This document shows positions 21,907-24,390 of a stretch of 64,000 bases of DNA, piece after piece; position 1 is the stretch's first letter, and each line of letters opens with the position of its first letter. The notes under the pieces are model-generated. The model ran no database searches and was not told the origin of the DNA. It saw only the letters and a program-made list of their open reading frames with translations. This DNA is from Lama glama (lineage: Eukaryota). The DNA is taken from the NCBI GenBank assembly GCA_028534125.1, contig CM052838.1, forward strand, positions 65,286,001 through 65,350,000, written 5' to 3'. A program made the translations under genes and the position numbers.

Positions 21907-22040
21907 CACAAAGACCCGGCCCCCGGCCACAGGGACCCTCCCCCGATCACAGGGACCCTCCCCTGATCACAGGGACCTGGCCCCGAATCACAGGGACCCG
22001 ACCCCTATCACAGGGACCCGGCCCCGGATCACAGGGACCC
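21907..22040. repeat. 20-21-bp minisatellite, ~6-7 copies
   Basis: Variants of atcacagggacccggccccgg in tandem. Confidence 0.92.
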
Positions 22041-22089
22041 AGCGCCGGCCAGAGCAATGCCACCCACTCGAGTAGACACTGCCCTTGGG

Positions 22090-23374
22090 GCGGATGGCCT
22101 AGAAAACAAAGATTCTGCGTTTTCTCCAAGTAACTTCCTGTGCTCCATGTTGTCTTATCAGGTCTTTGATTACTTAGAAGAGCTGTGCCTTCTCAATATT
22201 AAAAGAACTAAGCTTTTTCCCCTAAAATATGTGATTTCCTGTATTTGCCTTTAAAGTCTTTGTCACTTTGGTTCAATGGCTAAATACTGTTTCACGATGA
22301 CCTGCAATCTTCCTTAACTGTGTTTCAACCTTTCGACATTTTTACAAATGTCCGAAAATCAAATTTGAAATAAAGTATTTTTTGACCCCGAACTAACTTT
22401 GGGATTTTCAGGAGGGCCCCTGGAGAATCTCAAAAGATTTGCAATTGTGCCTTTATATAAAAATAGAGAGATTAAACCAGTGAGGCTTATCTAACATCCT
22501 AAGTTACACAGAAAGCATTGCCAAATAAAAGCTGGTGATAAGCCTGCTCTAGCTTATACTGGTGTGGACACAGGCTACTTACAGGCCAGTGTTTCCAGAA
22601 TTAGATAGGATGTCCAGAGATTCTTCAATGTCCTCACTGTTCATGCAATGTCACAATTCCAATGATTACTGTAAACATCACGCGGCACAGAACCCAGCAC
22701 CTTCGGTGTCAGTTGCGTCACTTCTGCAATGAACTCGTCAGATCTCTGACCGTGGCTATTTTCAGCCTTCGGTCATTTACAGACACTTACTGTTCTGCGC
22801 TGACACCTTCGCGGACACTTTTACAATCCACCATAGACAACAGGGCCTCCCCTTCAAAAAGCTCACGGAAAGGACTCTGACGACGACCCTAGAGCACAGG
22901 CGTCTGGACGCTTTATAATCAGACCACTGGCCTCGATGAGACCTCCTACAACCCTGACGGGACCAAGGGTGGGTTCATCAAACTACTAACCCAAGATCGA
23001 GCAAAAGAAGGCCTAAATAAGCTCAGGAAGGTGGTCACCATTTTCACGACTTCTGTTTGGAGCACTGCTGCTTCCTTAATGTTTTGTTTTTCAGGCTTAA
23101 GAATTTCTTTTTGTCTCTTTCTCAGGCTGTTGATGGCTTACAGCAACCTGGCAAATCACACCTTCGTAAACAGAATCAAGACATTTATCTTTCCTCCCAA
23201 CCTGATCCCTCCAAAACTTAGAAGCCTTTGTTAAAGACTCTATTTTCACAGGTACAGTTTTTACACAAGGCCAGGAAGAATACGTTCTCCTGGTAACGGG
23301 GCATGATTTATAACAGGGGTCATGTTACCAAGACTCCGACGGGAAGGTCACACTTTAAAATAACGCGATCAGGT
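22090..23374 (+). mobile_element. ERV1-class (MER4-group-like) internal remnant, left part
   Basis: AT-rich block resembling MER4-group internal consensus (aactttgggattttcaggagggcccctggagaatctcaaaag; tttatctttcctcccaacctgatccctccaaa); no intact ORF. Confidence 0.6.
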
Positions 23375-24390
23375 GGCTCTAGGCATTTTCACCGTGAGAA
23401 TCTTCGCTTCAGCTGGCTTCGTCGCACAACTAATCAGCCATAAGACAATTCTGCCGTACAAGATAAACTAGTGAAAATGCAGTAGAAGAGAGGCATGCAA
23501 AAGGACTTACTGAAACATGAAGATCAGTAACAAACATTTTTAAGCACTTCATTGTAAAAAATAAAAATAAAAAAACACCCAAATGTGTTTAAAACGTGTG
23601 CAGACTCATGATTACAGCTGTGCTGGGGCACATCTTAGAGAGAACACTGCTGCTTCCTCCCTCAGAGTCAGCCATCAAGGACTTAACGTCGACATAAATT
23701 CTTACTACATAAAAAAATCTGCTCTGAGTCTCTCTGGATTTTCCTGGAAGTGAAACACATGCTGGACGCTGCTGCTTCCTGTCGCTGTACGGGACGTACG
23801 TGCCTGGTAGTAGGTGCCCGGGCGTCCCCGAAACGCTCCGTCCTGTGGCCAGTCCCTGTCCTGCTGCAAACCGTCTAAGCGGGGTCCCGGACCAAGCACC
23901 AGAATCCTGTCTGCATCACATTCTCCACCAACAAACATCAAAAAGGTCTCACCGCTTCCAAGAAAGTTACACTCATCAGGAGTCACGGAACCACTTCCTT
24001 CAGGGGAGCCGGAGGAGCTGAGCCTTCCGTTGCCCCCAGCCTCTAAAACTGCGCCAAACATTTGGGAAAGACGGTGTGAGACACTGTATCTGACTTAGCT
24101 GAAGAATCGATAATTAGTGCCAAGATGGCTGTGGGTTCGTTGCTGCCCCTTTTCCATTTGCAGTAGGTTGGGAAACTTCTGGTTTTGTTGGGTGGGAGGG
24201 GCGTCTGTGCTCAGAAAGGACCCGCCCACCGACATCACTGTCTAGTGTAGTTTGCAGTCTGGCTTCTGTGGCTTGGAAACTCAACTGTCAAACCGAACTG
24301 CCAAGCAGTCAGTTTATCTTTTATGGCCAATTAGATGTGCAGGGAAACTGTTCGGGACAAAGATGTTCACAGGTGAAAATACCAGATGCT
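23375..24390 (-). mobile_element. Mutator-like (MULE/MuDR) DNA transposon fossil, internally deleted
   Basis: Imperfect ~80-90-bp TIRs (23375-23470 vs 24310-24389) enclosing a decayed transposase segment with DG[T>A]F, LPGKS.ET..RFF and MAD[F>S]E motifs. Confidence 0.8.
23590..24061 (-). pseudogene. Decayed MULE-family DDE transposase fragment with one frameshift
   Basis: ...GETFLMFVGGECDADRILVLG...DWPQDGAFRGRPGTYYQ /frameshift/ PACVSLPGKSRETQSRFFYVVRIYVDVKSLMADSEGGSSSVLSKMCPSTAVIMSLHTF*. Confidence 0.75.

Follow-up and report, generated by a model that had tools for sequence, protein, structure and literature searches.

A decayed, internally deleted Mutator-like DNA transposon with a MULE transposase remnant in the llama genome, most probably a copy of RICKSHA_0

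The closest described counterpart of the element reported here is RICKSHA_0, a eutherian repeat of the class DNA/MULE-MuDR, for which Repbase gives 79-bp terminal inverted repeats (TIRs) around a distinct internal sequence (Zhi et al., PMC1431705). In its published graph path, each TIR edge measures 72 and the middle edge 855, amounting to ~999 bp (72+855+72; PMC1431705), and the division of 999 bp with 79-bp TIRs into 79+841+79 is our own arithmetic on these figures. Ricksha proper is instead a composite that gained the 3' end of ERVL together with an MLT2B LTR (PMC3531169). Only Ricksha, Ricksha_0 and Ricksha_a are listed as MuDR-type repeats for human (PMC5753468). Coding remnants of mammalian MULEs are already on record: 437 human MULE-MuDR protein fossils have been reported, 374 of which lie under RepeatMasker DNA-class annotations (Frith 2022, PMC9004415). 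The mammalian MuDR/Ricksha entries could not be matched to MULE transposases in an earlier review of Mutator evolution, which questioned the presence of MULEs in vertebrates (Dupeyron et al. 2019, PMC6446971). A further type of relevance is Phantom, a Mutator subclass (Marquez & Pritham 2010) that two papers place in invertebrates, protists and insect viruses (PMC3169594, PMC6446971); the latter also questions an earlier report of a Phantom element in the horse.

Here we analyzed a stretch of 64,000 nucleotides of Lama glama (contig CM052838.1, positions 65,286,001 to 65,350,000), hereafter the window, in which a first-pass annotation had proposed a TIR-bounded, internally deleted Mutator-like element with a recognizable transposase remnant. 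This proposal holds, being backed by colinear protein relatives and by inverted arms that score above all controls. We assign a probability of about 0.78 to the reading that the element is a dead, non-autonomous MULE DNA transposon copy on the minus strand, internally deleted and neutrally decayed, and most probably a member of the known eutherian RICKSHA_0.

The element occupies 23375-24389, in total 1,015 bp, with two imperfect inverted ends and 841 bp between the arms. The right arm, the 5' TIR in transposase orientation, spans 79 bp (24311-24389, minus strand), while the left arm, the 3' TIR, spans 95 bp (23375-23469, minus strand), that is 79 bp plus an extra 16 bases; conservation is poor in the outermost 10 bases of either arm, leaving the ends, and hence the figure of 79 bp, uncertain by a few bases. 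Long TIRs as in Mutator/MULE elements are present at 79 and 95 bp. In a global alignment of the left arm to the reverse complement of the right, 57 of 78 positions are identical (73%); the mismatches comprise 15 transitions and 6 transversions, and there is one gap, of 16 bases. A repeat search recovered three inverted pairs (23382-23393/24372-24383, 23424-23443/24321-24340 and 23453-23469/24311-24327) that jointly form one long imperfect TIR, and the two element ends can be aligned by MAFFT across ~100 columns. The local alignment score of the arms is 21, to be compared with a mean of 8.1 (sd 1.3, maximum 18) in 1000 shuffles and a mean of 9.4 (maximum 17.5) for 973 control pairs with the same spacing from other parts of the window. 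Moreover, the 20-base core of the arms is found at only these two sites in the whole 64 kb. Inverted ends had previously been placed at 23375-23470 and 24310-24389, and this assignment is upheld by an arm identity exceeding every control.

The 16 bases present in the left arm alone (23444-23459, the gap of the arm alignment) are located between TTATGGC-like direct repeats; the corresponding place in the right arm, which lacks them, is at 24320-24327. Open reading frames (ORFs) of other copies imply the same segment, as P0032, P0021 and P0033 all read through it as 'WQNC', which implies an ancestral presence of the segment at the 3' end. A loss from the right arm via slippage is therefore probable, or else the two ends of the family differ. 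Target-site duplications of ~9 bp (8-11) were also sought, as had been proposed for verification of the element. The best agreement over 864 combinations of end offsets was 5/8 and 6/10, which does not exceed chance, and no convincing duplication was thus recovered at these ends. A 9-bp duplication is indeed expected to be blurred, because sites have undergone ~17% change since insertion.

We then turned to the interior. The longest of the relevant stop-free pieces on the minus strand, 23708-24094 (129 aa), was searched using phmmer against 1.84 billion proteins, yielding 27 matches at E<=1e-3, the best at 3.8e-9. Pfam annotation of 10 long matches identified FLYWCH (PF04500) together with MULE (PF10551) in three, MULE alone in three and FLYWCH alone in two truncated proteins, with the remaining two matching no family. 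As an example, QQP42000.1 of the copepod Caligus rogercresseyi (P0009) shares 36% identity with the piece over 81 aa without gaps. A profile built from 14 long phmmer matches was subsequently run on the complete set of 1952 stop-free pieces obtained from the six frames of the window. Piece 23708-24094 came first at 64.5 bits, the next being 24117-24287 and 24003-24113, with 23592-23915 (108 aa) in seventh place, all on the minus strand. These four pieces of the element, top or near-top among the 1952, thereby share strand and order with the profile and the proteins.

Reading along the minus strand, the remnant can be followed as a series of colinear blocks. The first, at 24117-24266 within piece 24117-24287, corresponds to the C-terminal half of the FLYWCH zinc finger and the region that follows; here, blastp against the 1952 pieces aligned residues 42-91 of P0028 with 40% identity (E 1.5e-6), and P0128 of Palaemon at E 1.2e-5. 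The FLYWCH similarity is thus to the second half, as matched by proteins bearing PF04500; the first half is absent and Pfam FLYWCH does not match the piece. Next, a linker remnant is split over two frames at 24003-24144, with ALIIDSSA at 24097-24120 and RSFRGWGQ at 24030-24053. In this region, residues 9-33 of P0024 align with 24144-24070 (E 0.002), residues 105-135 of P0028 with 24083-24003 in piece 24003-24113 (E 0.046), and residues 12-38 of P0014 with the same 24083-24003. The best-kept block, 23756-23995, represents the region before the MULE catalytic domain and its start, including GETFLMF, DADRILVLG, WPQDGAF and PGTYYQ, and is matched by residues 139-218 of P0028 at E 7e-14. The first catalytic Asp is encoded at 23840-23842 of this block.

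A frameshift between the main reading frames follows at 23751-23760: the alignment to P0009 and P0127 reaches ..SSSVQHVF (to 23753) and resumes at LPGKSRET (23750) in another frame. The second part of the MULE domain, 23613-23750, contains LPGKSRET.. and SLMADSEG with the second Asp at 23667-23669, and was matched in colinear order by three proteins: P0129, of which residues 216-266 are 37% identical (E 0.020, with this piece third among the 1952), P0127 (E 0.11) and P0014 (E 0.64). Finally, a weak continuation at 23475-23612 comprises SLHTF, near the C..FH motif, and then ..CLSSTAF, with an A-rich run at 23549-23583; tblastn with residues 120-210 of P0014 extends to 23475 at 30% identity, which taken alone is not significant, and here the coding similarity ends. 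The first Asp is aligned to that of the motif W..DGTF, and the second to that of M.DFE. All the minus-strand peptides quoted in the first-pass annotation are present, and the order of motifs, the frameshift and the positions of both Asp are exactly as described there.

Aggregated, the remnant covers residues ~40-312 of a transposase of ~450 aa, starting halfway through the FLYWCH finger, with at least four frame changes and several stops, such that all frames are broken by stops. Using a 453-aa relative as reference, the parts that are absent amount to ~40 residues at the N-terminus and the C-terminal third (~140 residues), including the region of the catalytic Glu. Of the D-D-E triad, the first and second Asp are consequently kept and the part with the Glu is deleted, which is expected in a non-autonomous fossil and is no argument against MULE ancestry.

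How well the individual blocks are supported was assessed using 300 dinucleotide shuffles per sub-region, with stops read as X in the local shuffle test. None of the 300 shuffles reached the profile score of the central block (60.9 bits), nor that of the upstream block 24003-24300 (12.1 bits), while 3 of 300 reached the 3.0 bits of the downstream block, the second part of the MULE domain. The assignment of the second MULE half is the weakest link, resting on colinearity as much as on score. Several searches of the element pieces were negative: a direct Pfam scan with five stop-free pieces searched separately returned no MULE or FLYWCH match at E<=10, the PDB sequence search gave nothing, and the ESM Atlas offered nothing for the 129-aa piece beyond bacterial clusters that are unrelated (0.86). 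A word-index protein search with the window piece likewise gave no match, as the decay leaves no common words of five residues. The outcome of the Pfam scan can be attributed to the MULE domain starting at DGTF, with the frameshift cutting it ~30 residues later. Thus, where the translated frames had been proposed for comparison with Pfam MULE, the direct route yields nothing, but an indirect one succeeds: the relatives identified by phmmer carry PF10551, and the alignment spans DGTF to the second Asp, indicative of a MULE DDE domain. The empty Pfam, PDB and ESM Atlas searches are also what could be cited in favor of the inverted ends and peptide motifs being a chance resemblance in GC-rich DNA. 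We rejected this explanation, the chance of which we regard as negligible, considering the best E-value among 1.84e9 proteins, the profile score that no shuffle reached, the arm score above 1000 shuffled and 973 genomic controls, and the colinearity of the pieces with the proteins.

The element also belongs to a repeat family. Protein collections contain many short unnamed ORFs that are clear sister fossils, and among these P0005/P0032, P0021 and P0033, from other public assemblies, begin in this transposase block and continue into translated end sequence of the kind seen here. For P0032/P0005, the C-terminal match is to 23397-23468 (E 1.6e-4), and for P0021 and P0033 to 23433-23477 (P0021 at E 8.9e-4); in the left arm, it is the translation ..QNCLMAD.LC.. 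that the C-termini of the unrelated ORFs P0032/P0005 and P0021 match. The junctions between end sequence and transposase block differ among the sister ORFs and from the llama copy, and these therefore stem from further copies that carry internal deletions of their own and have this 3' end in common. A profile built from eight of these ORFs matched 107 protein clusters. In addition, among the Logan contigs of four related organisms, both arms (23424-23477 and 24321-24367) and the coding block 23949-23996 are matched by short stretches of further contigs at 80% likeness. Profiles of the sister ORFs recovered 0 loci in viral contigs and JGI metagenomes. Some of the unnamed ORFs, which come from ENA and Logan, could stem from host DNA within metagenome assemblies, and the designation as a mammalian family refers to the shared end sequence as distinct from taxonomy.

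Some of the sister ORFs are related more closely to each other. P0024, P0074, P0075, P0076 and P0090 (96-97 aa), together with P0077 (45 aa), are 84-87% identical and terminate at a common stop behind ..DRILVFGT; they resemble a single fossil locus sampled in several related hosts, which would represent an orthologous insertion. The llama copy (24003-24060), P0012, P0016 and P0004 have one frame register in common across A- and C-runs upstream of the RNGY..IPDE block, a region in which the frame is intact in P0006, P0024, P0036 and P0041 and in which other copies shift at nearby homopolymer runs. The shared register could be the mark of a defective master copy, or of recurrent slippage, and is suggestive only.

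With the architecture established, the element can be placed relative to the Ricksha repeats, using published dimensions. It shares with RICKSHA_0 the 79-bp arm, intact in length on the right and recognizable as 79 + 16 in the 95 bp on the left, a total length of ~1 kb (1,015 against ~999 bp) and a non-retroviral interior, here 841 bp with the transposase remnant; likewise, it is non-autonomous, ancient and much diverged (PMC1431705, PMC5753468). The llama copy differs from RICKSHA_0 in the 16 extra bases of one arm. From Ricksha proper it would differ in that an ERVL/MLT2B piece is not suggested by anything in the six-frame scans. By size and end structure, matched to published dimensions as distinct from sequence, the element most probably represents RICKSHA_0 at near full length. 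The exactness of the size agreement is partly luck, as the copy is old and its ends uncertain, yet the architecture fits.

The first-pass annotation had instead suggested a poorly described family with termini unlike those of Ricksha, a view that finds no support, with TIR length and total size fitting the published RICKSHA_0 (PMC1431705). A related alternative is that the fossil derives from another eutherian family, a relative of Ricksha that is separate from it and so far absent from Dfam and Repbase. Such a family would be compatible with the MULE identity and the multi-copy nature demonstrated above, with the different Ricksha termini noted in that annotation and with the 63 of 437 human MULE-MuDR fossils that fall outside RepeatMasker DNA annotations (PMC9004415), and the likeness to Ricksha is here one of dimensions. 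We nevertheless judge it unlikely, as TIR length and total size are close to RICKSHA_0, no other repeats are as thoroughly curated as the mammalian ones, and one MuDR group alone is listed for human (PMC5753468).

In the preferred reading of a RICKSHA_0 copy, the element would be a cut-and-paste Mutator-like DNA transposon that has kept both 79-bp TIRs. Its transposase gene is decayed and frameshifted, with the start, the last third and the catalytic Glu lost; movement would therefore have been possible only with transposase supplied by a complete element. As judged from the arms, the insertion would have occurred tens of millions of years ago, followed by neutral decay in a GC-rich region.

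The protein similarity in addition provides a connection to the Phantom type. The element resembles Phantom as follows: the relatives matched by the remnant carry an N-terminal FLYWCH finger and a MULE domain, the remnant itself spans from the second half of the FLYWCH region to the second catalytic Asp, and the TIRs are simple. For Phantom, the target-site duplication is given as 8-10 bp; the best values here are those mentioned above, 5/8 and 6/10. The closest named and largely intact relatives are FLYWCH-MULE proteins from a prawn (Palaemon carinicauda, P0128), an octopus (Octopus vulgaris, P0039) and a copepod (Caligus rogercresseyi, P0009), which are open reading frames in invertebrate genomes; the llama piece shares 36% identity with them over 81 aa, and the llama copy is far more decayed. 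When the majority residues of 20 sister fossil ORFs are considered over an 80-aa core, the identity is 71% to both the prawn and the octopus proteins, 65% to Macrobrachium, 59% to Caligus and 42% to sand fly. Over the same core, the Palaemon and Octopus proteins (P0128 and P0039) are 79% identical to each other. Over longer stretches, the unnamed query P0028 shares 86% identity with the protein from prawn and 76% with that from octopus. The two palaemonid shrimps, Palaemon carinicauda (P0128) and Macrobrachium rosenbergii (P0138), are further apart in the core, at 59%. In a tree of the core, the llama sequence groups with Caligus, the prawn/octopus proteins and the fossils in a clade of good support (95/90), nearest to the fossils but on a long branch, with the inner forks of the clade remaining unresolved.

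The patchy distribution among aquatic invertebrates fits, and thereby suggests, horizontal transfer, as a lead drawn from the 80 most conserved residues and from unnamed ORFs. More broadly, either the eutherian Ricksha-type elements may be Phantom-type FLYWCH-MULEs that were horizontally transferred to an early mammalian ancestor, from a donor lineage with its closest living members in aquatic invertebrates, or there may be a second, undescribed mammalian MULE family; this pair of options we put forward tentatively, as possible yet doubtful. If true, the reading of horizontal transfer would answer the question raised in 2019 on true vertebrate MULEs. The similarity between the fossils and the proteins from prawn and octopus represents a lead on the route of the lineage into mammals. 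As a single copy of a known repeat, the llama element matters little. It rather serves as a worked example of a mammalian element in which 79-bp inverted repeats are combined with a significant colinear FLYWCH-MULE match and both aspartates. The match supports the MULE-MuDR classification in Repbase and Dfam, and would place the lineage with the FLYWCH-bearing Phantom type.

The age of the RICKSHA_0-like copy can be approximated from its arms. Their Jukes-Cantor distance of 0.33 corresponds to ~0.17 changes per site for each arm, provided that these were identical at insertion. At ordinary mammalian neutral rates, we infer an insertion that would be tens of millions of years old, an estimate affected by the substitution rate, which may exceed the ordinary one in a region of 61% GC. 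The locus (2.2 kb) is complete in all four related organisms with 4-8 differences, which show no thinning out within the element relative to its flanks. The observed/expected ratio of CpG is 0.58 in the element, 0.49 in the window and 0.51-0.55 in the flanks; being like its flanks and the window in this respect, the element displays no sign of youth or constraint.

These data also bear on the idea that the MULE-derived sequence now serves the host, as a regulatory element or as a domesticated coding piece. While the CpG ratio of 0.58 and the retention of the locus in four related organisms could be taken in its favor, the former equals that of the GC-rich surroundings, and the four organisms are near-identical throughout, so that the shared locus is uninformative on constraint. 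Furthermore, every frame is broken by stops and at least four frame changes, and differences between the organisms are as frequent in the element as in the flanks. We therefore consider host use very improbable and retain the neutrally decayed transposon.

In the surroundings, Pfam analysis of 10 flank pieces and of the 10 longest open frames of the window gave nothing, with no exon or gene identified, and Rfam was negative for the whole 64-kb window. A run of 500 N at ~36-38 kb of the window marks an assembly gap or a masked stretch. The overall GC content of the window is 61%, and the 2 kb around the element, 22001-24000, form an AT-richer island (45%). Compared with the sister fossils, many residues of the llama copy have changed to Gly, Pro, Arg and Ala, as for instance in FGTESGLDDLVKYKDWACDGTFK against LGPGPRLDGLQQDRDWPQDGAFR, which looks like GC-biased substitution. 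Immediately to the left of the element, the stretch 23133-23223 is multi-copy in the four related genomes, with a word depth of 3-6 times the baseline and matches of 80-90% in other contigs, and is probably a fragment of an unrelated interspersed repeat.
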